Source: Anaeramoeba ignava BMAN (Eukaryota; Protista; Anaeramoebae). Taken from it: a DNA stretch of 64,000 bases. This document shows positions 19,692 to 63,040 of this stretch, piece by piece. Made by a program: the position numbers and the translations under genes. Numbering within the stretch: the stretch's first letter is position 1; every line of letters starts with the position of its first letter. The notes beneath the pieces were generated by a model. That model was not told where the DNA came from. It did no database searches and saw nothing but the letters and a program-made list of their open reading frames with translations. The DNA lies in NCBI GenBank assembly GCA_028826165.1, contig JAPDFW010000063.1:620001-684000 (forward strand), in the 5' to 3' direction.

Positions 19692-22600
19692 ATGAATCAA
19701 AATAATTTAAATTCAAACACACAAAAACCTCATTCAAATCAAAATCAAAATCAAAATCAAATTCAAAATCAAAATCAAAATCAAATTCAAATTCAAAGCA
19801 TAAATCAATTAAAACAAATTTATAAAGCAATTAAAACAAATGATATTCAATTTTTTGATTCAATTTCAACTTTGAAAACAACAGAACAATTTGAAAAAGA
19901 AAATGAACCTTTTCTAAAATTTGCTTTTGAAAACAAATCAAAAAAAGAAATTATTCAAAAACTTATTGAAAAAGAAACAAATTTAAATTGGGTTGATAAA
20001 TATCAAAATAATCCTTTACATATTGCTTTAGAAAATGAATATCCAAAAGAAATTATTGAATTATTAATTTCCAAAGGTTCTGATATTAATTCAAAAAATA
20101 AATGGAATGAAATACCTTTACATATTGCTTTGAGAAATAAATATCCAAATGAAATTATTGAATTATTAATTTCCAAAGGTTCTGATATTAATTCAAAAAA
20201 TAATCAAAATGAAATACCTTTACATATTGCTTTGAAAATAAATATCCAAATGAAATTATTAAATTATTAATTTCCAAAGGTTCTGATATTAATTCAAAAA
20301 ATTATTGGAATGAAATACCTTTACATATTGCTTTAGAAAATCAAAATCCAAATAAAATTATTGAATTATTAATTTCCAAAGAATCTGATATTAATTCAAA
20401 AAATTATCGAAATGAAATACCTTTACATATTGCTTTGAAAAATAAATATTCAAAAGAAATTATTGAATTATTAATTTCCAAAGGTTCTGATATTAATTCA
20501 AAAAATAAATGGAATGAAATACCTTTACATATTGCTTTGAAAATCAATATCCAAAAGAAATTATTGAATTATTAATTTCCAAAGGTTCTGATATTAATTC
20601 AAAAAATTATCGAAATGAAATACCTTTATATTGCTTTGAAAAATAAATATCCAAAAGAAATTATTGAATTATTAATTTCCAAAGGTTCTGATATTAATTC
20701 AAAAAATAATTGGAATGAAATACCTTTACATATTGCTTTAGAAAATCAAAATCCAAATGAAATTATTAAATTATTAATTTCCAAAGGTTCTGATATTAAT
20801 TCAAAAAATAATCAAAATGAAATACCTTTACATATTGCTTTGAAAAATAAATATCCAAATGAAATTATTGAATTATTAATTTCCAAAGGTTCTGATATTA
20901 ATTCAAAAAATAATGAAAATGAAATACCTTTACATATTGCTTTGAAAAACTAAAATCCAAATGAAATTATTAAACTATTAATTTCCAAAGGTTCTGATAT
21001 TAATTCCAAAAATAAACAAAATGAAATACCTTTACATATTGCTTTCGAAAATAAATATCCAAATGAAATTATTGAATTAATTTCCAAAGAATCTAATATT
21101 AATTCAAAAAATAAACTGAATGAAATACCTTTACATATTGCTTTGGAAAATAAATATCCAAATGAAATTATTGAATTATTAATTTCCAAAGGTTCTGATA
21201 TTAATTCAAAAAATTATTGGAATGAAATACCTTTACATATTGCTTTGGAAAATAAATATCCAAATGAAATTATTGAATTATTAATTTCCAAAGGTTCTGA
21301 TATTAATTCAAAAAATAATGAAGATGAAATACCTTTACATATTGCTTTCGAAAATGAATATCCAAATGAAATTATTAAATTATTAATTTCCAAAGGTTCT
21401 AATATTAATTCAAAAATAGATGAAGATGAAATACCTTTACATTTTGCTTTGAGAAATCAATATCCAAATGAAATTATTGAATTATTAATTTCCAAAGGTT
21501 CTGATATTAATTCAAAAAATAATCAAAATGAAATTCCTTTACATATTGCTTTCGAAAATAAATATCCAAAAGAAATTATTGAATTATTAATTTCCAAAGG
21601 TTCTGATATTAATTCAAAAAATTATTGGAATGAAATACCTTTACATATTGCTTTGAAAAATAAATATCCAAATGAAATTATTGAATTATTAATTTCCAAA
21701 GGTTCTGATATTAATTCAAAAAATAAACTGAATGAAATACCTTTACATATTGCTTTGGAAAATAAATATCCAAAAGAAATTATTGAATTATTAATTTCCA
21801 AAGGTTCTGATATTAATTCAAAAAATAATGAAAATGAAATACCTTTACATATTGCTTTGAAAAATAAATATCCAAAAGAAATTATTGAATTATTAATTTC
21901 CAAAGGTTCTGATATTAATTCAAAAATGGATGGAAATGAAATACCTTTACATTTTGCTTTGAGAAATAAATATCCAAAAGAAATTATTGAATTATTAATT
22001 TCCAAAGGATCTGATATTAATTCAAAAAATTATCGAAATGAAATACCTTTACATATTGCTTTCGAAAATAAATATCCAAATGAAATTATTGAATTATTAA
22101 TTTCCAAAGGTTCTGATATTAATTCAAAAAATAATTGGAATGAAATACCTTTACATATTGCTTTGAAAAATAAATATCCAAAAGAAATTATTGAATTATT
22201 AATTTCCAAAGGTTCTGATATTAATTCAAAAATAGATGGAAAAGAAATACCTTTACATTTTGCTTTGAGAAATAAATATCCAAAAGAAATTATTGAATTA
22301 TTAATTTCCAAAGGTTCTGATATTAATTTAAAAATGGATGGAAATGAAATACCTTTACATTTTGCTTTGAGAAATAAATATCCAAAAGAAATTATTGAAT
22401 TATTAATTTCCAAAGGTTCTGATATTAATTCAAAAAATAATTGGAATGAAATACCTTTACATATTGCTTTGAGAAATAAATATCCAAAAGAAATTATTGA
22501 ATTATTAATTTCCAAAGGTTCTGATATTAATTCAAAAATAGATGGAAAAGAAATACCTTTACATTTTGCTTTGAGAAATAAATATCCAAAAGAAATTATT

Positions 22601-24125
22601 GAATTATTAATTTCCAAAGGATCTGATATTAATTCAAAAATAGATGAAGATGAAATACCTTTACATTTTGCTTTGAAAAATAAATATCCAAATGAAATTA
22701 TTGAATTATTAATTTCCAAAGGATCTGATATTAATTCAAAAATAGATGAAGATGAAATACCTTTACATTTTGCTTTGAAAAATAAATATCCAAAAGAAAT
22801 TATTGAATTATTAATTTCCAAAGGTTCTGATATTAATTCAAAAAATAAACAAAATGAAATTCCTTTACATATTGCTTTGGAAAATAAATATCCAAATGAA
22901 ATTATTGAATTATTAATTTCCAAATGTTCTGATATTAATTCAAAAAATAATCAAAATGAAATACCTTTACATATTGCTTTGAAAATAAATATCCAAAAGA
23001 AATTATTGAATTATTAATTTCCAAAGGTTCTGATATTAATTCAAAAATAATGAAAATGAAATACCTTTACATATTGCTTTGAAAAATAAATATCCAAAAG
23101 AAATTATTAAATTATTAATTTCCAAAGGTTCTGATATTAATTCAAAAAATAATCAAAATGAAATACCTTTACATATTGCTTTGAAAAATAAATATCCAAA
23201 TGAAATCCAAATTTTATTAATGAGAGATTTGAATATTTTTGAATTGAAAAGAAAAAGAATTAATCAAGAAATAATTGAATTATTTCCAAAAATTTATTCA
23301 TTTAATGATGATTTAAACAATTTTTTGAAATCAAATGAATTTAAAGATATTGAAATTAAAAGTAATGATGGTGAAATAATTAAAGCTCATAAACAAATTT
23401 TATTAATTAGATTTAATAATAATCAAACAATTTTAACAAGATTTATTAATATTTGCAGAAGAAAATCAAAAGAAATTATTCAATTTTCATTAAATTTTCT
23501 TTATACAGGATTTATTGATTTTGATAAATTTATTGAAAAATTTAATCAAAAATTTAATCAAAATGAAACAAATGATTCAAATTCAAATTATCAATTTTTA
23601 TTTTCAAATCAAATTGAAAAAATACAAAAAGAAGAACAAGAATTAATTTTAAATCAAATTGAAAATCAAAATGAAAAATTTGAAAAAGGGTTAATTTATG
23701 ATTTATTTGAACAAACAGGATTTGATTTAAAATGGATTAAAGAAAAAGAAGGAATAAAAGGAATATTAAAAGATTTTGAAAAATTTTATCAACAAAATGA
23801 AACTAAAGATTTTACAATAATTGTTGAAGAAAAAGAAATTAAAGTTCATAAATTAATATTACAAATAAGAAGTGAATTATTTAAAGGAATGTTTTTAAGT
23901 GTTAATGATTTATCAAATCAAGTTCATGATTATTCAGAAAAATCATTTGAAACAATTCAACAATTAATTTATTTTCTTTATAATGATAAAATTGATGAAA
24001 CAAAAATAACAAAAGAAAATATTGAAGAATTTACTGATTTAAAAGATTTTTATCAATTAAATCAAAAATCAATTTTAGGATCTTATTTACTTGATTTTTA
24101 TTCCAAATCTTTTTCAAAAAATTAA
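19692..24125 (+). CDS. Ankyrin-repeat (~32 x 34 aa) plus BTB-like protein, paralogue 1; several frameshifts and one TAA
   Basis: [30 protein letters not shown] repeats; C-terminal [19 protein letters not shown] and [30 protein letters not shown]. Confidence 0.88.
20007..23210 (+). repeat. 102-bp coding tandem repeat (ankyrin), ~32 units
   Basis: CCTTTACAT anchor at 20013, 20115, and so on to 23166. Confidence 0.95.
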
Positions 24126-24218
24126 TTTTAATCAATAATTTTCATTTTTTCATTTTTTCATTTTTTTCATTTTTTCATTTTTTTTAATAAATCAAATTTA
24201 AATTTAATATAAAAAAAA

Positions 24219-26558
24219 ATGAATCAAAATAATTTAAATTCAAACACACAAAAACCTCATTCAAAATCAAAATCAAATTCAAAATTAAAATCAAAATCAA
24301 AATCAAAATCAAAATCAAAATCAAAAAAATCAAAATCAAAATCAAAATCAAAATCAAAATCAAAATCAAAATCAAAATCAAAATCAAAATCAGAATCAGA
24401 TTCAGAATCAAAATCAAAATCAAAATCAAAATCAAAATCAAATCAAAATCAAATTCAAAACATAAATCAATTAAAACAAGTTTATAAAGCAATTAAAACA
24501 AATAATATTCAATTTTTTGATTCAATTTCAACTTTGAAAACAACAGAACAATTTGAAAAAGAAAATGAACCTTTTCTAAATTATGCTTTTGAAAATAAAT
24601 CAAAAAAAGAAATTATTCAAAAACTTATTGAAAAAGAAATTAACTTAAATTGGGTTGATAAATATCAAAATAATCCTTTACATATTGCTTTAGAAAATCA
24701 ATATCCAAAAGAAATTATTGAATTATTAATTTCCAAATGTTCTGATATTAATTCAAAAAATAAATGGAATGAAATACCTTTACATATTGCTTTGAAAAAT
24801 AAATATCCAAAAGAAATTATTAAATTATTATTTTCCAAAGAATCTGATATTAATTCAAAAAATAATGAAAATGAAATACCTTTACATATTGCTTTGAGAA
24901 ATAATTATTCAAAAGAAATTATTAAATTATTAATTTCCAAAGAATCTGATATTAATTCAAAAAATAAATGGAATGAAATACCTTTACATATTGCTTTGAA
25001 AAATCGATATCCAAATGAAATTATTGAATTATTAATTTCCAAAGAATTTATTATTAATTTAAAAAATAATGAAAATGAAATACCTTTATATATTGCTTTG
25101 AAAAATAAATATCCAAAAGAAATTATTAAATTATTAATTTCCAAAGAATCTAATATTAATTCACAAAATAAATGGAATGAAATACCTTTACATATTGCTT
25201 TGAAAAATAAATATCCAAAAGAAATTATTGAATTATTAATTTCCAAATGTTCTGATATTAATTTAAAAAATAAATGGAATGAAATACCTTTATATATTGC
25301 TTTGAAATACCAAAATTCAAATGAAATTATTGAATTATTAATTTCCAAAGGTTCTGATATTAATTTAAAAAATAAACTAAATGAAATAGCTTTACATATT
25401 GCTTTGAGAAATCAATATCCAAAAGAAATTATTGAATTATTAATTTCCAAATGTTCTGATATTAATTCAAAAAACAAACTAAATGAAATACCTTTACATA
25501 TTGCTTTGAAATACCAAAATTCAAAAGAAATTATTAAATTATTAATTTCCAAATGTTCTGATATTAATTCAAAAAACAAAATAAATGAAATACCTTTACA
25601 TATTGCTTTGAAAAATAAATATCCAAATGAAATCCAAATTTTATTAATGAGAGATTTGAATATTTTTGAATTGAAAGAAAATGAAATTAATCAAGAAATA
25701 ATTGATTTATTTCCAAAAATTTATTCATTTAATGATGATTTAAACAATTTTTTGAAATCAAATGAATTTAAAGATATTGAAATTAAAAGTAATGATGGTG
25801 AAATAATTAAAGCTCATAAACAAATTTTATTAATTAGATTTAATAATAATCAAACAATTTTAACAAGATTTATTAATATTTGCAGAAGAAAATCAAAAGA
25901 AATTATTCAATTTTCATTAAATTTTCTTTATACAGGATTTATTGATTTTGATAAATTTATTGAAAAATTTAATCAAAAATTTAATCAAAATGAAACACAA
26001 ATTGATTCAAACTCAAATTATCAATTTTTATTTTCAAATAAAATTGAAAAAATACAAAAAGAAGAACAAGAATTAATTTTAAATCAAATTGAAAATCAAA
26101 ATGAAAAATTTAAAACAGGATTAATTTATGATTTATTTGAAAAAACAGGATTTGATTTAAAATGGATTAAAGAAAAAGAAGGAATAAAAGGAATATTAAA
26201 AGATTTTGAACAATTTTATCAACAAAATGAAACTAAAGATTTTACAATAATTGTTGAAGAAAAAGAAATTAAAGTTCATAAATTAATATTACAAATAAGA
26301 AGTGAATTATTTAAAGGAATGTTTTTATTAAATGTTAATGATTTATCAAATCAAGTTCATGATTATTCAGAAAAATCATTTGAAACAATTAATCAATTAA
26401 TTTATTTTCTTTATAATGATAAAATTGATGAAACAAAAATAACACAAGAAAATATTGAAGAATTTAATGATTTAAAAGATTTTTATCAATTAAATCAAAA
26501 ATCAATTTTAGGATCTTATTTAGTTGATTATTATTCCAAATCTTTTTCAAAAAATTAA
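24219..26558 (+). CDS. Ankyrin-repeat (10 units) plus BTB-like protein, paralogue 2, intact 779 aa
   Basis: Uninterrupted ORF with N- and C-terminal regions nearly identical to paralogue 1. Confidence 0.92.
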   Translation: MNQNNLNSNTQKPHSKSKSNSKLKSKSKSKSKSKSKKSKSKSKSKSKSKSKSKSKSKSESDSESKSKSKSKSKSNQNQIQNINQLKQVYKAIKTNNIQFFDSISTLKTTEQFEKENEPFLNYAFENKSKKEIIQKLIEKEINLNWVDKYQNNPLHIALENQYPKEIIELLISKCSDINSKNKWNEIPLHIALKNKYPKEIIKLLFSKESDINSKNNENEIPLHIALRNNYSKEIIKLLISKESDINSKNKWNEIPLHIALKNRYPNEIIELLISKEFIINLKNNENEIPLYIALKNKYPKEIIKLLISKESNINSQNKWNEIPLHIALKNKYPKEIIELLISKCSDINLKNKWNEIPLYIALKYQNSNEIIELLISKGSDINLKNKLNEIALHIALRNQYPKEIIELLISKCSDINSKNKLNEIPLHIALKYQNSKEIIKLLISKCSDINSKNKINEIPLHIALKNKYPNEIQILLMRDLNIFELKENEINQEIIDLFPKIYSFNDDLNNFLKSNEFKDIEIKSNDGEIIKAHKQILLIRFNNNQTILTRFINICRRKSKEIIQFSLNFLYTGFIDFDKFIEKFNQKFNQNETQIDSNSNYQFLFSNKIEKIQKEEQELILNQIENQNEKFKTGLIYDLFEKTGFDLKWIKEKEGIKGILKDFEQFYQQNETKDFTIIVEEKEIKVHKLILQIRSELFKGMFLLNVNDLSNQVHDYSEKSFETINQLIYFLYNDKIDETKITQENIEEFNDLKDFYQLNQKSILGSYLVDYYSKSFSKN

Positions 26559-26657
26559 TTTTAATCAATAATTTTCATTTTTTCATTTTTCATTTTTTTC
26601 ATTTTTTCATTTTTTCATTTTAATTAATAAATCAAATTTAAATTTAATATAAAAAAA

Positions 26658-29600
26658 ATGAATCAAAACAATTTAAATTCAGAATCAGAATCAAAATCAA
26701 AATCAAAATCAAAATCAAAATCAATATCAAATTCAAAATCAAATTCAAAATCAAATTCAAAATCAAATTCAAAATCAAATTCAAATTCAAAATCAAAATC
26801 AAAATCAAATTCAAAATCAAATTCAAATTCAAATTCAAATTCAAAATCAAAATCAGAATCAAATTCAAATTCAAAATCAAAATCAAAATCAAAATCAAAT
26901 TCAAAATCAAAATCAAAATCAGAATCAAAATCAGAATCAGAATCAGAATCAAAATCAAAATCAAATTCAAATTCAAATTCAAATTCAAAATCAAATTCAA
27001 AATCAAATTCAAAATCAAAATCAAAATCAAAATCAAATTCAAAATCAAATTCAAAATCAAAATCAAATTCAAAATCAAATTCAAAATCAAATTCAAATTC
27101 AAAATCAAATTCAAATTCAAATTCAAAATCAAAATCAAAATCAAATTCAAAATCAAAATCAAAATCAAATTCAAAATCAAAATCAAATTCAAATTCAAAT
27201 TCAAAATCAAATTCAGATTCAAATTCAAAATCAAATTCAAATTCGAAATCAAATTCAAAATCAAAATCAAATTCAAATTCAAAATCAAAATCAAATTCAA
27301 AATCAAAATCAAATTCAAATTCAAAATCAAAATCAAATTCAAATTCAAATTCAAAATCAAAATCAAATTCAAATTCAAATTCAAAATCAAAATCAAAATC
27401 AAATTCAAAATCAAATTCAAAATCAAAATCAAAACCAAATTCAAATTCAAAATCAAAATCAAATTCAAATTCAAATTCAAAATCAAATTCAAATTCAAAA
27501 TCAGAATCAAATTCAGATTCAAATTCAAAATCAAATTCAGATTCAAATTCAAAATCAAATTCAAATTCGAAATCAAATTCAAAATCAAAATCAAATTCAA
27601 AATCAAAATCAAAATCAAATTCAAATTCAAATTCAAAATCAAATTCAAAATCAAAATCAAATTCAAAATCAAATTCAAATTCAAATTCAAAATCAAAATC
27701 AAAATCAAAATTCAAAATCAAAATCAAAATCAAATTCAAAATCAAAATCAAAATCAAATTCAAATTCAAAATCAAATTCAGATTCAAATTCAAAATCAAA
27801 TTCAAATTCGAAATCAAATTCAAAATCAAAATCAAATTCAAATTCAAAATCAAAATCAAATAAAAAATCAAATTCAGATTCAAATTCAAAATCAAATTCA
27901 AAATTCAAAATCAAAAAATCAAAATCAAAATCAAAATCAAATTCAAAATCAAAATCAAATTCAAATTCAAAATCAAAATCAAATTCAAATTCAAATTCAA
28001 AATCAAAATCAAATTCGAAAAAATCAAATTCAAAATCAAAATCAAAATCAAAATCAAATTCAAATTCAAAATCAAATTCAAAATCAAATTCAAATTCAAA
28101 ATCAAAATCAAATTTAAAATTCAAATTCAAAAATCAAAATCAAATTCAAATTCAAAATTCAAAAAAATCAAAAAATTAAAATCAAATTCAAATTCAAATT
28201 CAAATCTCAAAATCAAATCAAAAATCAAATTCAATTATTCAAAAAAATTCCAAATTCAAAATCAAAATCAAATTAAATCAAAATCAAAATTCAAAATCAG
28301 AAAATATCAAAATCAAATCAAAATCAAAACAAATTCTTTGGAAAATAAAAATCAAAAGAAATTTCAAATTCAAATTCAAAATCAAAATCAAAATCAAATC
28401 AAAATCAAAATCAAATTTAAATTCAAATTCAAATTCAAAATCAAAATCAAAAGAAATTCAAATTCAAAATTCAAATTCAAATTAAAATCAAAAAAAATTC
28501 AAAAAAATTCAAATTCAAAAATAAAATCAAATCAAATTATTGTTTTCAAAATCAAAATCAAAATCAAATTCAAATTCAAAATCAAAATCAAAGGTTCTGA
28601 AATCAAAATTCAAAAAAAATTCAAAATCAAAATCAAAATCAGAATCACAAATTGCAAATTAGAAAATAAAATTCAAAAGAAATTATTGAATTCAAATTTC
28701 AAATTAAAATTCAAATTCAAATTCAAATTCAAAAATCAAAATCAAATTCCAACTACAAATTCAAATTGAAAAATCAAAATCAAAAAGAAATTCAAAATCA
28801 AATTCAATTTCAAAAATCAAAATCAAATTCAAAAATAAATCAAAATGAAAGAATTTACAAATTCAAAATTCAAAATGAAAATAAAAATCCAAATCAAATT
28901 CAAATTAAATTTCCAAATTCAAATTCAAAATCAAAAATCAAAATGAAAATGAAAAATCAAAATCAAATTCAAAATCAAAATCAAAATCAAAATCAAATTC
29001 AAAATCAAATTTCAAATTCTAAAATCAAATTCAAAAATAATCAAATTGAAAATTCAAATTCAAAATAAAAATCAAATCAAATTCAAATCAAAAATCAAAA
29101 TCAAAAGGTTCAAAATCAAATTCAAAAATCAAAAGAAATACCTTTACATTTTGCTTTCAAAAAATCAAAATCAAAATCAAAATTCAAAATCAAAATCAAA
29201 GGTTCTGAAATTAATTCAAAAATTATCAAATTAAATTCAAACAAATTAACATCAAATTCAAATTGAAAAATAAAATCAAATTCAAATTCAAATTCAAAAA
29301 TCAAATTCAAAATCAAAAAAATCAAATTCAAACTCAAATTCAAAAATCAAATTCAAAATCAAATTCAAATCAAAATTGTTTTTGAAAAATAAAAATCAAA
29401 TGAAAAAATCAAATTATTAAATTCAAATTCAAAATCAAATTTCAAAAATCAAAATCAAATTCAAAATCAAAATCAAATTCAAAATCAAAATCAAATTCAA
29501 ATTCAAAATCAAATTCAAATTCAAATTCAAAATCAAATTCAAAATCAAAATCAAATTCAAAATCAAAATCAAATTCAAATTCAAAATCAAATTCAAATTC

Positions 29601-31934
29601 AAATTCAAAATCAAAATCAAAATCAAATTCAAAATCAAATTCAAAATCAAATTCAAAATCAAAAACAAAACATAAATCAAATCAAAATCAAAATCAAAAC
29701 ATAAATCAAAACATAAATCAAAACATAAATCAATTAAAACAAGTTTATAAAGCAATTCTAAAAAATAATATTCAATTTTTTGATTCAATTTCAACTTTAA
29801 AAACAACAGAACAATTTGAAAAAGAAAATGAACCTTTTCTAAAATTTGCTTTTGAAAATAAATCAAAAAAAGAAATTATTCAAAAACTTATTGAAAAAGA
29901 AAATAATTTAAATTGAGTTGATAAATATCAAAATAATCCTTTACATATTGCTTTAGAAAATCAATATCCAAATGAAATTATTGAATTACTAATTTCCAAA
30001 GGATCTGATATTAATTCAAAAAATAAATGGAATGAAATACCTTTACATATTGCTTTGAAAAATCAATATCCAAATGAAATTATTGAATTATTAATTTCCA
30101 AAGAATCTGATATTAATTCAAAAAATAAATGGAATGAAATACCTTTACATATTGCTTTGAAAAATAAATATCCAAATGAAATTATTGAATTATTAATTTC
30201 CAAAGGATCTGATATTAATTTAACTTTTGAAAAAATTGGGTTGATAAATATCAAAATAATCCTTTACATATTGCTTTGAAAAATAAATATCCAAATGAAA
30301 TTATTGAATTATTAATTTCCAAAGGTTCTGATATTAATTCAAAAATAATGGATGAAATACCTTTACATATTGCTTTGAAAAATAAATATCCAAATGAAAT
30401 TATTGAATTATTAATTTCCAAAGGTTCTGATATTAATTCAAAAAATAACAAATGAAATACCTTTACATATTGCTTTGAAAAATAAATATCCAAAAGAAAT
30501 TATTGAATTATTAATTTCCAAAGGTTCTGATATTAATTCAAAAAATATCAAAATGAAATACCTTTACATATTGCTTTGAGAAAATAAATATCCAAAAGAA
30601 ATTATTGAATTATTAATTTCCAAAGGTTCTGATATTAATTCAAAAAATAAATGGAATGAAATACCTTTACATATTGCTTTGAAAAATAAATATCCAAATG
30701 AAATTATTGAATTATTAATTTCCAAAGGTTCTGATATTAATTCAAAAAATAATGAGAATGAAATACCTTTACATATTGCTTTGAAAAATCAATATCCAAA
30801 AGAAATTATTAAATTATTAATTTCCAAAGGTTCTGATATTAATTCAAAAAATAATCAAAATGAAATACCTTTACATATTGCTTTGAAAAATAAATATCCA
30901 AAAGAAATTATTGAATTATTAATTTCCAAATGTTCTGATATTAATTCAAAAAATAATGAAAATGAAATACCTTTACATATTGCTTTGAAAATAAATATCC
31001 AAATGAAATCCAAATTTTATTAATGAGAGATTTGAATATTTTTGAATTGAAAGAAAATGAAATTAATCAAGAAATAATTGAATTATTTCCAAAAATTTAT
31101 ACATTTAATGATGATTTAAACAATTTTTTGAAATCAAATGAATTTAAAGATATTGAAATTAAAAGTAATGATGGTGAAATAATTAAAGCTCATAAACAAA
31201 TTTTATTAATTAGATTTAATAATAATCAAACAATTTTAACAAGATTTATTAATATTTGCAGAAGAAAATCAAAAGAAATTATTCAATTTTCATTAAATTT
31301 TCTTTATACAGGATTTATTGATTTTGATAAATTTATTGAAAAATTTAATCAAAAATTTAATCAAAATGAAACAAATGATTCAAATTCAAATTATCAATTT
31401 TTATTTTCAAATAAAATTGAAATTGAAAAAATACAAAAAGAAGAACAAGAATTAATTTTAAATCAAATTGAAAATCAAAATGAAAAATTTAAAAAAGGAT
31501 TAATTTATGATTTATTTGAACAAACAGGATTTGATTTAAAATGGATTAAAGAAAAAGAAGGAATAAAAGGAATATTAAAAGATTTTGAACAATTTTATCA
31601 ACAAAATGAAACTAAAGATTTTACAATAATTGTTGAAGAAAAAGAAATTAAAGTTCATAAATTAATATTACAAATAAGAAGTGAATTATTTAAAGGAATG
31701 TTTTTAAGTGTTAATGATTTATCAAATCAAGTTCATGATTATTCAGAAAAATCATTTGAAACAATTAATCAATTAATTTATTTTCTTTATAATGATAAAA
31801 TTGATGAAACAAAAATAACAAAAGAAAATATTGAAGAATTTACTGATTTAAAAGATTTTTATCAATTAAATCAAAAATCAATTTTAGGATCTTATTTACT
31901 TGATTATTATTCCAAATCTTTTTCAAAAAATTAA
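26658..31934 (+). CDS. Ankyrin-repeat (~11 units) plus BTB-like protein, paralogue 3, with a ~3-kb N-terminal microsatellite expansion; disrupted (pseudogene or poor assembly)
   Basis: Same MNQNNLNS start and same C-terminal ~300 aa. TGA replaces TGG at ~29914; multiple frameshifts. Confidence 0.7.
26678..29730 (+). repeat. (TCAAAA/TCAAAT)n hexamer expansion, clean to ~27900 and degenerate/mosaic to ~29450
   Basis: Directly visible; encodes (SK/SN)n in frame with ATG 26658. Confidence 0.9.
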
Positions 31935-44944: not shown

Positions 44945-45860
44945 ATGAAAAAAATGAAAATATTTATTTTTGCTTTTTTTTTAAAAAATTTAAAATAAGA
45001 AAAAAAGTGGAATAAAAATAAAATTAAATTTAAAAATATTATTTTATTAAATAAAATATTATTATAATTAAATTAATTTTATTTTAAATATTTTTAAAAA
45101 TTTAATCAAAGTCAAAATGAAAATATTTTTTTTTTTAAAAAATTTAAAAATAAAATTTTTAAAAATTTAATTATTAAATAAAAAAATGAAAATATTTTTT
45201 TTTAATTTTTAAAAATTTAAAATAATAAAAAGTGGAATTTTAAATTTAAAAATATTATTTTATTAAATAAAATATTATTATAATTAAATTAATTTAATTT
45301 AAATATTTTTAAAAATTTAATCAAAGTCAAAATGAAAATATTTTTTTTTGCTTTTTTTTTTAATTTTTAAAATAATAAAAAAAGTGGAATAAAAATAAAA
45401 TTAAATTTAAAAATATTATTTTATTAAATAAAAAATATTATTATAATTAAATTAATTTTATTTTAAATATTTTTAAAAATTTAATCAAAGTCAAAATGAA
45501 AATATATTTTTTTTTAAAAAATTTAAAATAATAAAAAAAGTGGAATAAAAATAAAATTAAATTTAAAAATATTATTTTATTAAATAAAATATTATTATAA
45601 TTAAATTAATTTTATTTTAAATATTTTTAAAAATTTAATCAAAGTCAAAATGAAAATATTTTTTTTTGCTTTTTTTTAAAATATTTAAAATAATAAAAAA
45701 AGTGGAATAAAAATAAAATTAAATTTAAAAATATTATTTTATTAAATAAAATTATTATTATAATTAAATTAATTTTATTTTAAATATTTTTAAAAATTTA
45801 ATCAAAGTCAAAATGAAAAAATATTTTTTTTGCTTTTTTTTTTAATTTTTAAAATCATTT
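44945..45860. repeat. ~155-165-bp degenerate tandem repeat (5-6 copies) containing AAAAGTGGAATAAAA and AATCAAAGTCAAAATG
   Basis: AAAGTCAAAATG at ~45108, 45323, 45487, 45641, 45805; AGTGGAAT at ~45006, 45231, 45383, 45539, 45701. Confidence 0.85.
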
Positions 45861-46558: not shown

Positions 46559-49500
46559 TTATTTTTTTAAAATTTCTTCCCATTCTACATCTCCAAGATT
46601 TGTTTCTAAATTAAATGAATTTTCGTTAATTATAATTGAAGGAAATAATTCTTGAAGATAAAAACTAAATAGATTGTAAAATAAATTGTAAAATAAGTAA
46701 ATAGAAAAATAAGTAAATAGATTGTAAAATAAAAAAACAAACCTATCCCAAAATTTTAATAAACCCATATAAGTTTGAATTCCAAGAATTCCATCATATT
46801 TTTTATAACTTGGATTTAAATATTCTTGATTAGAATTAAGTAAAGTCCATAAAGAATAAGTTCTATATTGTAATTTTTTTTCAAATCTTTCAAAATCATT
46901 ATCACATAAAAAAGTCCCAAATCTTCTTGAATTTAAATGTTCCAAAATTGAAAGAAGAAAAAAAGAATTAAATTCAAAAGCATTTGGAAATTGAGAAACA
47001 CATTGAAAAACACAATCAATCCATTGAATAAAAATAGGTGAATTTTGCTTATTAAAAGTATTCATTGAATCACAATGACCACATCTTTCTGTGAATTTAT
47101 GACCAAAACTAATCCAATCTTTTTCAATAAGAATAGAAAATCCTTTTATTGTTCTGTAAAATGGATCAAGAATAACTTCTGCTAAAGAACATACTTGTGA
47201 AGTATTATGTACAATAATTGTTCCAATTCCTGCTTGAAAATGTTCATTTTCTGTTGAGAGATCATAAACATAATTTGTTTCATCTTTATCAATTTTACTC
47301 TTTTTAATTATACAATTATTTTCAAAATTTAATGAATTGAAGTTTCGTTTTGATTCTTCACAAAAAATCTCGAAAACATTCATTTCTTCATTAAAATTTA
47401 CAAAACAATTTTTCTTGAATAACAATTTAATCAACAAATATAATCCAGCAATAAATATTTTACTTGATGAATTTAATATCATATTTTCCAATTTGAAATT
47501 TCTTTTTGTTTGATTAAATTCTCCAATTAAAAATCCATTCCAAAAAGATTCAATTAAATTTAGATCAAGATTGAAAATTAAATTTGGAATTTTTCTATTA
47601 TGATCTTTGTCAAAAAAATTATCATCAAAAAATTGAATAAATTCATCAATAACATCTTTTGATTTACTTTTTTCATAATTAATTTGAATTTGGTTTTTAA
47701 TAATTGAAATTGAAATTTGAGAATTGAATGAATTGAGTAACTTTTCAATAATTAATTTTGCTATAAATAAGACTTTCAATGAATTATGATGTAAATTCCA
47801 AAGATGAGATGATGAATTTACATTTCCATTAACTGTAAAAAGACCAAAAAACCAAATCAAATTATTTGTAATTTTCATTTCATTAAATTTATTTTGAGTT
47901 TGGAGAGTATTTTGTAAATCAAGTTCTTCTTCTTTTTGTATATTTAAATGAATTTTAGGGAAAATATTTAAATCAATTTCACTTTGTAATAATTTATCTC
48001 CAATTTGAGCTTTTTCTGCTTTAAAACAATTTCCTGAAGGATCAAGAAGACTATGACCAGTTGTAACATCAACAGATCCTGATTTTGTTTGAATTCTAAC
48101 AAGATCTTCTTTAGTCTTATGACGAATAATTTGATTTATTTTCGTAAATCCTAATTCTGTCCAAACTTCTATATTTTCATTAACAAAACAACTTTCTTTA
48201 TTTTTGATAAATTTATCTTTTTTCCATAATAAATCAAAATTCCTTAATTGATCAATTCTAAAAATTCCAATAAATTTCTTTGAAAAACGACATAAAATGG
48301 GTGAATCATGAGAAACACTACGATCCCAACCATCAGAACAATGAACAAGAACAGAACAATTTTTTTGAATAGATTCAACAACTTTAATTGAAGATTGCAA
48401 TAATTTTTGAATATGAAAAAGCCATTTTGTTTGAGCTAAAAATTCAAACCATTTTTGATCATCTTGTTTTTTATTTACAGTTTTTCTACATAATTTTCTT
48501 AATAATTCATAACTATTTCTCATATGATGAATATTTTCAATTCCCAAAAAAGTTAAAGAACATTCAGGATAATTTGAAATATTTTCATAACCTCCTCCTT
48601 TAGTTTTATTTCCGATTGCATTTATTTTAGGTCTACAATCAAAAATATCAAATGGTTTATTGGAACTCATTTTTTGGATAATTGAAATATATTTCTCATC
48701 AATTTGAGATCTATTAGAAAAAACTCCTTTTTTTTTTTGTTTTAAAAAGAAGAAAAACAAAATTTAATTTATTTGGAATAATTCTCTCTTTCTTTATTAA
48801 ATAAATTTTTATTACCTTTTTTAGGTTGTGATGATCTTGTAATACAAACTAATTTTTTTGGATGTTTCCATGTTAAAACTGGAAATCTTTTTTTTGTTCT
48901 AAATTTTGCAATCATTTCAAGTTCTTGTTTTGTAATATCTTTTGGAATAGCTAAAATATTTGGATAAGTTGGTGATAAATTAAAATTATTATTCCAATCA
49001 ATAATTATCCAATTCATATCTGAAAAATCTTTTGTGTTTTTTTTTTTTCAATTAATTAATTAAATTTAGATGAATTTTTTTTATTATTAAAAAGATCTTA
49101 TAAAAATTATTTCATTCTTTTACTTTGTCTTTCAAATTCTTCATTTATTTTATAAATTGACCATCCAAAATCTATTAAAGATTGATCAAAAATATTTTTA
49201 TGTTGAAAAGCAAATGAAAGTGTTATTTCATTTATAAATGAATTTTTGATAATTGAATCAAAAAGGAATGAGAATTTTTCATCTTTTTCAAAAATAAAAA
49301 ATTTAAATTTTCTAAAAGTTTTTTGATAAATTGAAAATCCAAAAGCATTTAAACCTAATTTTTAATTTTAATTTTTAATTGAAATTTTGATTTAAATTTT
49401 AATTTAAATTTGAATTTGATTTAATTTTGAATTTTGATTTTTTGATTTGATTTTGAATTTTTTTAAAATTTTGAATTTGAATTTTGAATTTTGAATTTGA

Positions 49501-50599
49501 ATTTGAATTTGAATTTGAATTTGAATTTTGATTTGAATTTGAATTTTGATTTGAATTTTGAATTTGAATTTGGGATTTGGAATTTGAATTTGAATTTTGA
49601 ATTTTAAATTTTGAATTTTATTTTGATTTGAATTTTTGAATTTTGAATTTAAAATTTTTTAAATTTTGATTTTGAATTTTTAAAATTTTTGAATTTTTGA
49701 ATTTTTTTGAATTTGAATTTTTGAATTTTGAATTTTGAATTTTATTTGAATTTTGATTTTGAATTTGAATTTGATTTTGAATTTGAATTTTAAATTTGAA
49801 TTTGATTTTTTGAATTTGAATTTGATTTTTGATTTTGATTTTTGAATTTTGAATTTAAATTTGATTTTTTTAATTTTTTGAATTTGAATTTAATTTTAAA
49901 ATTTGAATTTTGAATTTGAATTTTGAATTTGAATTTTGAATTTGAATTTGAATTTGAATTTGAATTTGATTTTGATTTTGGATTTAAATTTGAATTTGAA
50001 TTTGATTTTGAATTTGAATTTAAATTTGAATTTTAATTTTGAATTTGAATTTGAATTTTGAATTTGATTTTGAATTTGATTTGAATTTGAATTTAAATTT
50101 GGATTTGAATTTGAATTTAAATTTTGGATTTGAATTTGAATTTTGATTTGAATTTGAATTAACCATTATTAAATTGTTTTTCAATTTTTTTAATTTTTTG
50201 AATTTGTCCTAAAGGAATTGAGATAAAATGAAGTTTATTTGCCTATATTTTTTAAAAAGAAAGAAAGAAATAAATTAATTTTTTAAGGAAATCTTTAATT
50301 AAATAAAATTTTAAATTAAACTTTATGTTTTGGAAGAAAGATTAATCGATAATTTGTTAAAATTAAACTTCCTAATAAAAGAGAATCTGATGAAAGATGG
50401 AAATAAGAAATGTTCTCAATAAAAAAAATTTGATTTTCATTTATTATCCAAAATTTTTCATTTTCAATTTTGTTATTTTTCTTTTAAAAATTAATTGAAT
50501 AAAATTGTTTTTTTGATTAAATTTTTAAATTAAAAAGTAAATTAAATAATAAATTTTAAATACAACTTCAATAGATAATCTATTTATTTTCCTTTTCAT
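46559..50599 (-). CDS. Myotubularin-family phosphoinositide 3-phosphatase (PH-GRAM plus PTP-like domain) containing an intein. Exons ~50599-50564, 50480-50322, 50242-50164, 49354-49124, 49028-48816, 48726-46743, 46664-46559
   Basis: GSLILTNYRLIF, ISIPLGQI, GWSIY..EEFERQ, LSPTYP, FRTKKRFPVLTW, RSSQP, FDCRP..NA..N..KGGGYE, GIENIHHMRNS, VLVHCSDGWDR-[intein]-TSQVCSLAEVILDPFYRTIKGFSILIEKDWISFGHKF, QFPNAFEFN, RFGTFL. Confidence 0.95.
47204..48319 (-). mobile_element. Intein (372 aa) with a degenerate LAGLIDADG homing-endonuclease domain
   Basis: In-frame 1116-nt insert. Block A SVSHDSPI, block B VDVTTGHSLL (TxxH), block F YVYDLSTENEHFQAG, block G IIVHN, then extein Thr. Removal restores HCSDGWDR-TSQ. 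Confidence 0.95.
49360..50160 (-). repeat. Degenerate (AAATTC/AAAATC)n microsatellite filling myotubularin intron 3 (49355-50163)
   Basis: Directly visible. Confidence 0.85.
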
Positions 50600-55322: not shown

Positions 55323-58300
55323 TTAGTTTGATTCTAAATTATCTTCGCAAAATCTGTAAAAATGAACTAATTTTGATAATTTTAATTTTGGAAAGTTTTC
55401 AAACTTTTTTATATCTTCAAAAGTAATGAATTCATTATCAAATAATTCATTAAAAATTTCATCTTCTTTAATTGATTTAGGTTTTTTTGGTTTTTCTATT
55501 AAAATTTTAACTAATTTATCTAAACCTTCAAATAATTTGTTTTTAATTTTAGATTCCAATTTTTGGAATTCTGTTTTAATTGTTTGCTTTTCTTGAAGTG
55601 ATAATTGTTCTTGATATTCTTCAGGTAAAACTCGAGAAGGATGATTTAATTCTTTAACAATTTTATCAGATTTATCAATGTTTTTGTTTAATTTTTGTAA
55701 GGAGAATTGATGAATTTTATGAAATAAATTTGATTCTTGTTTTTCTTGTTGTTCTTGTTTTTCTTGTTTTTCTTTTTCTTTATAAATTTGATCAAAAGGA
55801 AGAAGAAATGTATCAATTGTTTTAAAATCTGGATTTAAATCATCTAAATAATATATTTCCCATTTTTCTTCAAAACAAATTCGGAATGTTTGATTTTCAC
55901 TTGATGAAAGATGAACAAAAAGAATAATAGTTTGTCTTTCTTTTTTCTCAAAATTTTCATTAGATTCAATTAAACTTTTAATATGTTGAAATGATTTCAT
56001 AATGTTTTTATCTGAAGATATTTCGAATTGAATGAAAATTGCTTTTTTATTTTCTTCTTTTAAATGAGAATTAATTGAGTTATTAAAATCATCTGTTTTC
56101 TCAAAATTTGTAATATTGATTATTGTGTAATTTTTGGTTTCATTTTTATAAAGTTCTCTAAATCAAATGGTGGTGAATTTGTTAAAATAATCAAATTATT
56201 TTCCTTTTCATTTTCCTTTTTTGATATTTTATCAAGTAAATCTTTTAAATCTGATGCTGTGTTTTGACTATAATTATCCAAATCTTTTTGAAGTGTTTCT
56301 TCAAATTCATTCAATTTTTCATGCTTTTCTTGTTTTTGTATTAAATGTTTTTTAAGATGAATCATTGTTCCTAATTTAGCAATTTTGTGCCAATAATCTT
56401 GATGAGGAATTGTTTTTTGTTTTGTTAATTTTGATTCTTTTTCTTGTAATTTGAATGAAAGAGAAGAAATTAAATCAGGATGGAAACCTGCTAATAATTG
56501 TGATGTTTTTGTTGATGTTATTTTTTTGATGTTTCCAAAATAATTTTGGATTTCTTGTTGATAATTTTTCCCTATCTCATTAAGAATATCATTTGAAGTA
56601 ACAAGTTGTTTTTCAAATTGATTTAAAATTGCTGGTGATAAATCTGTATAAGCTCTTTCTTTAGGCATAATAACAACAATTCTTGATGCTGGATTAATAA
56701 ATACTCTTGTTGTTGATGCTCCAAAACTTATATTTGAAATGTATTTATTCCCAATAACTGTGTATCTTTGATTTAATACATCATATAATGGTTCAAATAA
56801 TTGTTCTTGATTACATAAAACAATAATATTTGTATCAGCAATTAAATTGGCAACATTTTTCAAATCATGATAAGTTTGAATTTCTTTATCTTCATTGAAA
56901 TATGATCCATATAAAAGTTTAATGTTTCTTTCTTTAATATCTTTTTTCAATTTTTCAATAATTAATGGAAGAATTGTCATTTCTTCACAAATTATCATTA
57001 TGTGTCTTGATTTTATTTCTTGTTCATTTGGATTAATTTCTAAATTATCAGTAATTAGATTCATTGTTGATTTTTTTTCCATTATCTCATCATTCCAATA
57101 ACCATATTTTTTTAATAATGGTTGGATAATCTCATCAAAAAATTTTTTAGATGCTCCTCCAAAATTTCTGAGAAATGATTGAAAAACAATTTCTAAAATT
57201 TCTTGTTTTGAACATTCATTTTTCTTACCTTTCTCTTTTTTATCTTTCATATCATATCCAATCATTTTAATTAAATAATAAAAATCTCTTAATCCAAAGA
57301 AATTTTCCCTAATTATTCTTTCTTCACTTTCTTCAGTTTTTTTGATTTTTTTTTGTTGTATTTGAAATATTTCAAAATAAATTTCTGCAAGTTTTTCTGG
57401 TATTTTGAATTCTTTTTTACTTGGTTTATAAATTGATTCAATGAAAATTGATCCAAAAATTGATTTTCCTGTTTCTTTTAATTCTTCTTTATCTGGATCA
57501 TTTTTGAAGAAATATTCCTCGATTTGTTTTACTTGCATCAAGTTTCCAATTTGAAATTGCAATAACTGGGAATTTGTCTTCATCTCTTCTTGCATCTTGA
57601 TCAGATAATTCAAGTTCTTTATGTAATACTTTTAATGGGAATTCTGGATTCATTTCTGCAAGTGCAACTTCATCTAATAAAACAACTGGAACATTTCCTC
57701 TTCTTTGATATTGAAATTCTTGAAATTCTTCATATTCTAAATTTTCTAAATATTCTCTTTGTTGTTGTTTATAGTTTCTTGCTTGTTCAAATATTTTTTC
57801 TATAGCTCTTGGTGTTGTTTGAGGTGAACATTGTAATGGGAAAACTTGAATTCTTTTAAGTTTTCCTTCTCTAACATATTCATTATTTGATGAATTACTT
57901 AACCAATTCTTTAAAATATCGATTGATAATGATTTTGAAGTTCCTAATTTTAATTTTAATTTTAATTTTAATTTTAATTTTAATTTTAATTTTAATTTTT
58001 AATTTTAATTTTAATTTTAATTTTAATTTTAATTTTAATTTTAATTTTAATTTTGATTTTAATTTTAATTTTAATTTTAATTTTAATTTTAATTTTAATT
58101 TTAATTTTAATTTTAATTTTAATTTTAATTTTAATTTTAATTTTAATTTTAATTTTAATTTTAATTTTAATTTTAATTTTAATTTTAAATTTACCTGGTT
58201 TTCCAATTATGAATAAAGGAATTTTGGTTTGAATACAAATAAATTCAACTAATAAATTTTCTGTTAATGCTTCATTTGGTATAATTCCTTGTGATTTTAA

Positions 58301-61300
58301 ATATGATTTATCATCAATATTCCTAAAGAATTGTGTTCTGAGTTGATTTATAGCTTCTAAAAATTCATTTGTTGTTGTTGGGAATGCTGGTTGAAGATAA
58401 TGAAAAAATGGAGTAATTTTAATATCTTGCAAAATATATGAATAATAATCTGATCTTAAATTATCTGGAAATCTACATCCATAACTTATAAAAATTGATA
58501 AAATAATTCCAATCATCATTTTCCTTTTCTTTTGTTGAAATTTAGATTGCTTCATTGCTCTAAATTCTTCAGGATCAATAAAAAGGTTAAGTGTTAAACC
58601 ATCATTCAAAAGATATTCCCAAATTTTAAGTGTTCTTGCTGCATCTCTAAGTGAAATTGGAGTTTTTATATCAAATAATTTTAATTTTGCAAATTGATGT
58701 GTTTTGGAAAGTAAATGCCTAAAAAGTTCAATTGATTCATTAATTTCATCTTGAGTAAATCCCCAATTATTCCTAAATTTTTGTTTAATCATTTCATTTA
58801 AATAAAGTTTTTCACTTTCATCATCAAGTGATCCAAAATCAAAAATATGATCAAAAAATGAATCAGGAATTTCTCTAACTCGATAAACAGCTTTTTTTAA
58901 TTTTTTAACTTCTTTTGATCTTTCTCCATAATCAAAAATTGATTTCAATTCGAATCCAAATTCTTTTTCAATTTCATTTTCATTTTCATTTTCATTTTGA
59001 TTATTATTGTTATTATTATGATTTTGATTTTGATTTTGATTTTCATTTTGATTTTGATTTTGATTTTGATTTTGATTTTGATTTTGATTTTGATTTTGAT
59101 TTTGATTTTGATTTTGATTTTGATTTTGATTTTGATTTTCAATTTGATTTTGATCTGCTTTTGCTTCGGCTTTTCTATAAGGATTTGCAATTGCAATAAA
59201 TTGAAATTCTTTTGGAACTGTTTTTCCTTTATAAATTCTATCAATAATTAAATTCTTCATTAATGAAATACATTCTTTGGAAGCTGTATTAAATTGATCA
59301 AAAATAAATATTTGTGGAATATTTTCTCTTCTATTTGCTAACTTTTCTTCAATTATTTCACTTATCATTTCTTCTGTTGTTCCTCCATGAATATCTAAAA
59401 TGTTTAAAGGTTTTCCAAGTAAATCGTTAAATAAAAATTTGATTAATCTTGTTTTTCCACATCCTGTTTCTCCTAACATAATAACTGGTAATCCTGAAGA
59501 TAATCTTTGTTGAATTAAAACACATTTGATAAAATTATCATTTGTTAATCTATAATTTAAATTATTGATAATATTTGGTAAAATAAGTAATCTATTTTGT
59601 GCATCTCCAATTTTTAAAAGCAAATTTAAATTTTCTTGAATTGAATATTGATTTTCTGTTGAAATAGGTCCAAATGAAATATTTCTCCCTCTTAATCTAC
59701 TTTTTATTTCTTCAGAAAAAAATGTTTTTGTGATTTCATTTCGAGAAAGAACTTTAAAATAATCAATTGGTTGTTCTCTTTGACTTCTTGAAAAAGCTAC
59801 AATTTGTGAATCTTTCATTTTTTCATCCCATGATAAAGATGTTGTAAATTTATTACATTGAGATTCTTTTTTAATAATTTCAGTTGAAGAAAATGATCTT
59901 TTATTAATTGTAGATATTGTTTCAATTATTAAATTTGAAATTGAATTTCTGAATTCTTGAGCCATTTCTCTTTTATTTGCAAATAATCTTGTTGTTTCTG
60001 GATAAAAATCATTCCAATCTTTAATTAATTTAATATAAAATCCAAATAAATTCCAAAAATTGTTTAATAACATAAAAGTTGCTTCATTTTCATTAATTCT
60101 ATTAATTTCAAGAGTTTTATCAAATAATTGTTTTAGATTATAATTTGAATTTAGTAAAATTTCATCTCTTTTTGCAAAATTTAGATTATTAAAATTTTCT
60201 TCTTTTTGGTTTAAAAAATTTGAACAAATCACGATATTTTCATTAATATTTTGAATAATAATTTGGTTTTCATCAATTTCATATTTATATTTGCAAATAG
60301 TTTCTGAATCTGTTTTGCATTCTTTTTGTTCAATAAATTTAAGAGATGGGAAATATTTTAATCCAAATTCAGAATCTTTAACTCGTGAATTTGGAATTTC
60401 AAAATAAAACAAGTGTTTTTCTGGTTCAAAAATGAAAGTAGAATCATCATTTGAACATCTTTTATCTTCAATATTTCCAAATATTAATAATAACCAAATT
60501 AACTCAACTGTTTCATTTCCAGCAGAATAAGCTAAATCAAAATGGAAACATTTTCTTGAATTTGGTGATTTTTGTTCTTCTTCTATTAATTTTTGTATTA
60601 ATGATTTTGGATCATCTTTGAGAATATCAATATGGCAATATTTATATGGATTTTTTTTATTTTTTGTTTTGGAATTGATTTCAAATAATTCTTTTCTAAT
60701 TTGGAATGTTTTACCAGAACCTGCTAATTTTGAAATGAATACTTTCATTTTTTTAGATCTTTCTGGAAATTTCTCTTCCCATTCTTTTTGAATAAATTTT
60801 ATTTGTTTTGATATTTTTGTTTCTTGATCATCTTTATTCTTCTTTTCTGCTTTTTCCAATTTAAATTCATTTTGAATTTGATCTTGTTTTAAACTTGTGA
60901 AGAAAGAACTCAAATAATTTCTTGTTTCATTTGAATTTTCTAATGAAAATAACATTATTGATTTTTGTTTTGCTTGTGAATTATGTCTTCTTGTTGTTTT
61001 AAGTTTTGAAATCAATTTTTTTTGTAATGTTTTAGAAAGTTTATGAGGAAAAATAATTGAAAATAATTGATCATCAATTAATGTTTGTGATTTTTTAAAT
61101 AAAATAATAAATCTGGAAATATCATCTTCAGTTGTGTTTTTGTTACAAAAAAGAATTTGTTCTTTTGTTGGGAATTTTTTTGTGTATTTAAGATATAATG
61201 TTGTGAGAAATTCATAAATTTCCATTTCTTTTTGAATTTGAATAACAAATATTGGTTCTTGATTTTGTGGTGGCCAATTTGTGGAAAATAATTTTTGAAG

Positions 61301-63040
61301 TTCATTTTGTGATTTTGATTGTTTTTTTTTTGTTTGAATATCTGCTAATTCTCTTTTGAAAGAACGGAAATCTTTTGATTCATCATTTTTATTTCTTTTC
61401 CATTTAAAATTTTCATCTATTCCTGATAAATCAAGAGATGGTCTTATTTTTTCAATTTCTTTTGATTCTTTTGATTTAAGTGCATTATAAATTTCTTTAA
61501 TTTGATCAAATTGATTTTCAAGTTTTTGATGTAATTCTTGAATAAATAATTTAAAATCTTCTTCTTCTTTTTCATTTCTTTCCCATTTAAATTCTGAATT
61601 AATTTTTGATAAATGAAGAATTGGTTCAATTTTTTTAATTTCATCTCCATTATTTGATTTAAGAGAATTGTAAATAATTTTGATTTGATCATAAGAATAA
61701 AAGAAACTGTAAAAATATTTTCTAATTACTTCTTTTTCTATTTCTGTCCATTCCTTTTTCAATTTTCTCATTTCATCAATTATATTTTGCAAACTGTTTC
61801 TTGATTTAATTTCATTTTTAATAGAATAGCCTTTAATGAATTTAGGATGAATTGATTTCTTGAAATGATCAAATAAATTAATCATTTCTTGTATAAGTGG
61901 AATATAACCAGTAAACTTTTGTACTTTTGTGTCTTTTTCTTCATTTTCAAGTAATAGCATATTAATATCAACAAAATCTTGTAAAGAAAATTTATTTTGA
62001 TCATTTTTCTCTTTTAATTTAAAAATTTCACATTCAAATTCAATTTCATCTTTAATTTCAAATTTAAATGTTTTATTGGGGTTAGATAAAATATTTTCTA
62101 AATTTTTGAATGCTTTTTGTTTAGGTGTTTCAAGTTTTTGTCTGATTAAATCAATAATTTCTGGTAACGAAATGAAAATTTGTTTAATAGTTCTTGATTG
62201 TTGATCTTGATTAAATCCAAGTGATGATTTCTTTTTCCAATTTTTTTCATTTTCTTTGATTAAATTAATTAATTTGCTTAAAGTTGTAATTCTTGATTTT
62301 TCTTCTGATAAAAATTTTTCAAGTCTACTTCTAATATAATCAAAAGGTGCTTCAAAAATAAAAAACTCTTCATCAATCAAATCCATTACATTACTCCAAT
62401 CGTCTGTATATTCTTTCATAAAATTGAATAATTGATCATTAAAAATTGGAACACCATCTCTTACTTCTTTTATAGGGAAAATATCTGAAAGGAATGAAAA
62501 AAATTCTGGATTTAAACCTTGAATAAATTTTTGATAAAGGTTATAAAATGATTCAACATATTTTAAACTTTTAGTTTCTATTGATTTTCCAAAAATTGAT
62601 TTAAATTCTTCAAATTCTTTATCTTTTAATTCAAATTTTTCACAAAAGTGAATAAAAACTGGATAATTTTGATTTGATTCTTTTCCAAATTCAAAAAAAG
62701 GAAAGTAAAGTGAATTTGAATGGATTTTTCTTTCTATTGAATCACCAAATTGAAGGATATTTTTATTGGAAGAATCTTCAGTAATAACAAAATAAAAAGG
62801 AACTTCTAATATTTTGTTTAAATCAAGTTGCAAATACCAAATTGATTCATTTTCGTTTAGTTGATCCATTTCATGAATTTCATTTTCATTTTCTTTTTCA
62901 ATTTCTTTTTCTTTTTCTTTTTCTTTTTGTTTTTGTTTTTGAGGAATAACAATGAAAACTTTTTCTTTTTCTTTTTTCTTTTTAGGATCAATTAAAAGGG
63001 AAATTTGAATTAAATTTTGTTTTAAATTATTTAATTCCAT
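55323..63040 (-). CDS. RNF213/mysterin-like multi-AAA+ protein (~2,450 aa) lacking a recognisable RING/RZ E3 module; intron 57944-58194; frameshifts near 57500 and 56130
   Basis: SKLAGSGKT, PVIMLGETGCGKTRLIKFL, IHGGTT, IANPYRK, VYRVREIP, DFGSL, SLRD, NEALTENL, PLFIIGKPG|TSKS, LQCSP, VVLLDEVALAE, ISNWKLDASKTNRG, FFGLRDFYYLIK, RNFGG and LYDVLNQRY, all collinear with the RNF213 AAA core. Confidence 0.88.
57944..58194 (-). repeat. 251-nt GT-AG intron made almost entirely of (AAAATT)n, splitting a Walker A motif
   Basis: CCA G|GTAAAT...(AAAATT)n...TTAG|GA ACT TCA AAA TCA restores GKPGTSKS. Confidence 0.92.

Follow-up and report, generated by a model that had tools for sequence, protein, structure and literature searches.

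The 64,000-nucleotide stretch of Anaeramoeba ignava DNA analyzed here (the window) carries a nuclear myotubularin gene whose catalytic CX5R loop is interrupted by an insert that is confirmed, on its sequence and predicted fold, as a class 1 intein. Our preferred reading, to which we assign a probability of about 0.85, is that of a trapped class 1 intein of the polymerase/topoisomerase family, its endonuclease decayed and its splicing constitutive, residing in one branch of the A. ignava myotubularins. The existence of this intein is already known. Its host protein, KAJ5075926.1 (UniRef A0A9Q0RCY0; P0002 in our set), a 935-aa precursor, stands in GenBank as [quoted passage not shown] a name by which the depositors evidently recognized it and which removes the novelty implied by the original prediction. 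What is added here is a pair of predicted sister inteins in two more A. ignava paralogs, one unlabeled and one in a host whose catalytic motif appears dead. Neither these sisters nor the decayed LAGLIDADG domain nor the kinship with viral polymerase inteins figured in the original prediction.

The host gene and its insert

Exon-by-exon mapping of KAJ5075926.1 onto the window yielded seven exons separated by six spliceosomal introns (Table 1), and a search of cluster representatives gave 100% identity over the intein. The host, from a metamonad, matches MTMR2 structures at an E value of 1e-70. It carries HCSDGWDR, the myotubularin catalytic signature (PMC2927912), in a PF06602 domain accompanied by a PH-GRAM domain, the sequence features of an active myotubularin, and by this intact motif and these domains it is a predicted active enzyme. 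It has the PH-GRAM domain, phosphatase domain, and HCSDGWDR loop in common with active myotubularins of the MTM1/MTMR1/MTMR2 type (PF06602) but differs from them in that the intein parts the loop from the next helix and in belonging to an Anaeramoeba-specific expansion.

Table 1. Features of the intein-bearing myotubularin gene, in window coordinates
Feature	Position	Strand	Basis
Myotubularin gene (PH-GRAM + myotubularin phosphatase), 7 exons	46559..50599	-	Exons by peptide walk, ends approximate to codon
Large exon: catalytic domain N-side, whole intein, C-side	46745..48724 (about)	-	Exon mapping, ORF
Catalytic loop HCSDGWDR, Arg = -1 residue	48320..48343	-	MTMR2 alignment, exon mapping
Intein, 372 aa, Ser1 to Asn372	47204..48319	-	ORF, Pfam, TIGR01443, fold
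N-terminal Hint region, residues ~1-112, block A Ser1	47984..48319	-	Motif alignment, model
Block B T86-x-x-H89	48053-48064	-	Motif alignment
Degenerate LAGLIDADG homing endonuclease, residues ~149-325	47345..47875	-	Motif alignment, fold
Block C, Asn164 where relatives have Asp/Glu	47825-47854	-	Motif alignment
Block E, G-D-G lost	47516-47545	-	Motif alignment
C-terminal Hint region, residues 336-372	47204..47314	-	TIGR01443, motif alignment
+1 Thr, splicing nucleophile and conserved Thr after the CX5R Arg	47201..47203	-	Thr in 116/116 empty homologs listed

The 1,116 nt of the insert form 372 codons with 0 stops, against a mean of 37.6 and a minimum of 20 stops in 2,000 shuffles of the same bases. 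A Ser directly follows HCSDGWDR, His-Asn stands just before TSQ, and the host flanks align to MTMR2 (PDB 1zsq) as two pieces abutting at 354/355. The original prediction of an open 372-aa frame splitting VHCSDGWDR/TSQ right after the catalytic Arg (the slash marks the insertion point, here and below) was thus borne out. The insert is absent from 116/116 other myotubularins checked among the best 120 of 870 matches. It lies wholly within one exon (about 48724 to 46745); as a candidate GT-AG intron it was rejected, the sole shift giving clean removal being GT..TA.

All of the class 1 splicing residues that had been predicted were recovered. Judged by the class 1 residue criteria of PMC10663303, the insert is in frame and has Ser1, Thr+1, the TxxH of block B, a block F of YVYDL (with D353) followed by H360, a block G of H371-N372, and a predicted Hint fold. 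The profile search proposed with the original prediction gave a split outcome, with the TIGR01443 match exceeding its cut-off and the Pfam Intein_splicing match (E = 6e-8, 33 bits) falling slightly below its own (35.8). An alignment-based AlphaFold model of the intein (pLDDT 88, pTM 0.89) retrieved the full-length inteins PI-PkoII and TliVMA (2cw7 and 7qsu) in Foldseek at an E value of 1.5e-15. No second intein motif like this one was found in the 64-kb window.

Filled and empty paralogs

Two further A. ignava myotubularins, at loci taken from genome GCA_028826165.1, contain inteins at the matching position with 36 to 37% identity to the window intein. The first (KAJ5078849.1; P0006) has a 370-aa intein (L001:9491-10600) in an intact loop. 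Its GenBank name is only "myotubularin-related protein," with no mention of an intein, and it has no Pfam intein match; the intein may have been overlooked in annotation. The second (KAJ5068930.1; P0007) has a 382-aa intein (L002:9091-10236) with all splicing residues kept, and its loop reads QSANGRDR, without the catalytic His and Cys, making it a predicted pseudophosphatase. The search for empty paralogs suggested earlier was also fruitful: among the best 120 of 870 matches, an intein is missing from at least three A. ignava paralogs, which have an intact HCSDGWDR-T, and from two A. flamelloides proteins whose loops are likewise intact; further paralogs may exist beyond these 120 best matches. 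Filled and empty paralogs thus stand together in one genome (two predicted active hosts, one predicted pseudophosphatase host, and three empty), a set in which it could be asked whether an intein in a protein unrelated to DNA metabolism is carried neutrally or has a regulatory role.

No myotubularin intein was found outside A. ignava, either among the 116 other homologs (from the best 120 of 870) or among the top 150 intein relatives. The DNA pattern of the N-junction had two matches in metagenome contigs, both intein-free, and the myotubularin motif was not found in viral contigs. The A. ignava paralogs have intron positions around the large exon in common, and in the four genes mapped, no intron near the intein site was found that might block entry into the empty Anaeramoeba paralogs. 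An empty A. flamelloides myotubularin gene (L006:3261-9340) has a single 6-kb intron and none of the introns common to the A. ignava paralogs. In a metagenomic myotubularin gene (L088:60-123, reverse strand), an apparent intron starts within the catalytic Arg codon, which is the intein site, and is followed by a 4-base repeat.

Host trees were built with intein columns dropped or with the two host halves treated separately, the vertebrate rows being non-human only. Without intein columns, the six A. ignava proteins grouped at 94/96, the three empty ones at 100/99 (starred), and the intein-bearing trio only weakly, at 75/56; when the halves were analyzed separately, the trio was not recovered. 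The intein tree, an unrooted tree of 64 full-length rows drawn from about 150, placed the three myotubularin inteins in one clade (100/99, starred). The three filled paralogs are most simply explained by a single insertion and subsequent duplication. Homing between paralogs is a possible source of the sister inteins, and the host trees give no separation between these two routes. A third possibility is that the intein was gained and later removed precisely from the empty branch.

Conserved splicing domain and decayed endonuclease

The window intein has no Pfam LAGLIDADG match, and both LAGLIDADG motifs are recognizable in 65/77 polymerase inteins versus 0/3 myotubularin inteins. None of the three has the acidic residue and Gly ending blocks C and E that mark an active endonuclease. 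The two-repeat LAGLIDADG fold is kept (matches to I-DmoI and PI-SceI) in a model that draws on aligned sequences of intact relatives. Conservation is distributed unevenly along the three sisters, with 49 to 53% identity in the N-terminal Hint region, 64 to 70% in the C-terminal Hint region, and 27 to 30% in the endonuclease region, where polymerase inteins share 42%. All class 1 splicing residues are kept in three of three. A conserved Hint domain beside a diverged, motif-less endonuclease indicates, at the level of sequence, that splicing has been under selection in the myotubularin inteins while homing has decayed.

On the favored reading, the mRNA would keep the insert, as in the GenBank model, and yield the full-length precursor. 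Ser1 would undergo an N-O acyl shift at Arg/Ser, aided by T86/H89 and D353; the ester would then pass to Thr+1; Asn372 would cyclize with H371/H360; and an O-N shift would rebuild HCSDGWDR-T in a phosphatase of ~563 aa. The +1 Thr, which would act as nucleophile while also being the conserved residue after the Arg, would account for the ability of this site to host an intein, and the splicing domain would persist because any deletion short of an exact one would disrupt the loop. Splicing is most likely constitutive rather than regulated. The original prediction made phosphatase activity depend on splicing. For the window protein this very probably holds as regards maturation, but it does not extend to the cell as a whole, which has at least three intein-free paralogs. 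The precursor itself may be inactive, although this is uncertain because Ser1 occupies the position after the CX5R Arg; a precursor model made without alignment had a pLDDT of 34.5. The cysteine-independent Ser/Thr junction with a -1 Arg may serve protein engineering.

Relatives and origin

Apart from the trio, the relatives extracted comprised 111 PolB YGD, 28 PolB SAN, 7 topoisomerase II, and 1 glycosyltransferase intein (plus 1 mis-parsed), and a myotubularin is, as had been predicted, an unusual host beside these mostly PolB and topoisomerase II proteins. The sites of these relatives were almost all YGD/TDS and SAN/SMYG in PolB and two sites in topoisomerase II, with one in the glycosyltransferase. 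Named relatives include the PolB of Cafeteria roenbergensis virus and Aureococcus anophagefferens virus, and the best viral structural matches of the window intein are giant-virus polymerases. A scan of viral contigs by alignment found 558 relatives, many on GVMAG (giant-virus MAG) contigs, with YGD/TDS in 65/69 parsed sites; the same scan with a single intein sequence found none.

The giant-virus PolB pol-c inteins (Mimivirus, PMC549080; CroV YP_003970184.1) resemble the window intein in Ser1, TxxH, terminal Asn, +1 Thr, LAGLIDADG layout, and similar length, with ~26 to 32% full-length identity. In contrast to them, the window intein sits in a non-homologous host, at GWDR/TSQ rather than YGD/TDS, with decayed endonuclease motifs and a -1 Arg. 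With sequence kinship present and the YGD/TDS PolB site absent, it is a relative of the pol-c allele and not a member.

The fungal VMA1 (PI-SceI) and PRP8 inteins begin with Cys. They too are nuclear eukaryotic inteins with a Hint plus LAGLIDADG fold but sit in different hosts and have 10 to 12% identity to the window intein in structural alignment.

Sequence relationships point to a non-allelic jump out of the family of Ser/Thr inteins found in DNA polymerase B and topoisomerase II, a family common in giant viruses. The event would be non-allelic because the myotubularin host is not homologous to the polymerase, and it would have occurred within the A. ignava line, with spread among paralogs by gene duplication or homing. 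The donor need not have been a giant virus, since one close PolB relative lies on a prokaryotic-virus-like contig. An intragenomic donor is also possible, given that none of the matches was identified as a polymerase intein of A. ignava itself. The DNA likeness between the myotubularin and polymerase sites is weak (8.6/24 versus 6.2 +/- 2.1, against a background that is not frame-matched). In the intein tree, again unrooted, the row nearest the trio is a glycosyltransferase intein on a long branch (91/97, not starred). A related Ser/Ser intein (P0118:245-585), carried by small ENA contigs of prokaryote-like or virus-like character, interrupts a family 4 glycosyltransferase, a further non-replication host of the same intein family.

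The intein expansion in Anaeramoeba mentioned with the original prediction agrees with the main text of PMC10710043, according to which the A. ignava genome has 103 inteins, with 18 host groups described as novel, and splicing was demonstrated for three other Anaeramoeba inteins. That paper also argues that inteins have spread in this genome through viruses and by non-allelic insertion. The words "myotubularin" and "phosphatase" are absent from that main text, and our literature search found no paper pairing Anaeramoeba with myotubularin. The window intein would provide a worked example of non-allelic spread, with the PolB/topoisomerase II intein family inside an unrelated signaling enzyme.

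Alternative readings

Reading the insert as intronic, as a product of misassembly, or as viral or contaminant sequence is scarcely credible. A GT is present one base into it, but no AG matches that GT, so the insert is not removable as a GT-AG intron. Its predicted Hint fold and the homologous inteins at three loci on three contigs also speak against this reading, as do the six introns of the host gene itself and a GC3 (0.10) near that of its exon (0.07 to 0.08). A different objection to constitutive splicing is that the intein might splice poorly or not at all, or only cleave, leaving a crippled redundant gene. The window myotubularin has a host branch length of 0.81, versus 0.26 for P0006, and is without the C-terminal tail found in its sisters; redundant empty paralogs are present, and the -1 Arg departs from the usual Asp/Asn of the intein family. 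This is nevertheless very unlikely in view of the open frame, the complete splicing residues in three copies, the far better conservation of the Hint regions than of the endonuclease, and the intact host catalytic motif.

The original prediction also raised a posttranslational switch on PI3P signaling, which gained no positive support. In its fullest form, a virus-type polymerase intein would have been immobilized and domesticated, and conditional splicing, responsive to temperature, pH, metal, redox, or lipid binding, would control the maturation of some myotubularins, both active ones and pseudophosphatases, and gate PI3P/PI(3,5)P2 turnover. If true, eukaryotic phosphoinositide signaling would contain a native switch based on protein splicing, but we consider this improbable. 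The intein does sit in the active-site loop and, with its endonuclease decayed, persists in three paralogs that have diverged deeply, yet active-site placement and long retention are expected for any intein. Prokaryotic inteins with conditional splicing exist (PMC10663303), and all three myotubularin inteins have a Cys near position 10, but a Cys1 disulfide trap is ruled out by Ser1/Thr+1, and no sensing domain was seen in the predicted intein model. At least three A. ignava paralogs with intact loops and both A. flamelloides myotubularins retrieved are without an intein. The predicted pseudophosphatase P0007 retains one where splicing would have no catalytic activity to control, although the folding of that protein might still be gated.

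Other features of the window

Elsewhere in the window, a CDC20/Fizzy gene is split across two overlapping ORFs (15781-17650), through a frameshift or an intron. Tandem genes of ankyrin-like repeats and BTB-like domains, judged by eye, occupy 19692-31934 and have near-identical C-terminal parts. Between the HIT and myotubularin genes lies an AT-rich tandem repeat (45240-45855; period ~163, 3.8 copies, 92% matches), and an intron of ~809 nt in the myotubularin gene (49356-50160) is filled by a 6-base microsatellite. A very large gene in pieces (55323-63040) has a dynein-related AAA domain (AAA_5 match) and appears RNF213-like by eye.
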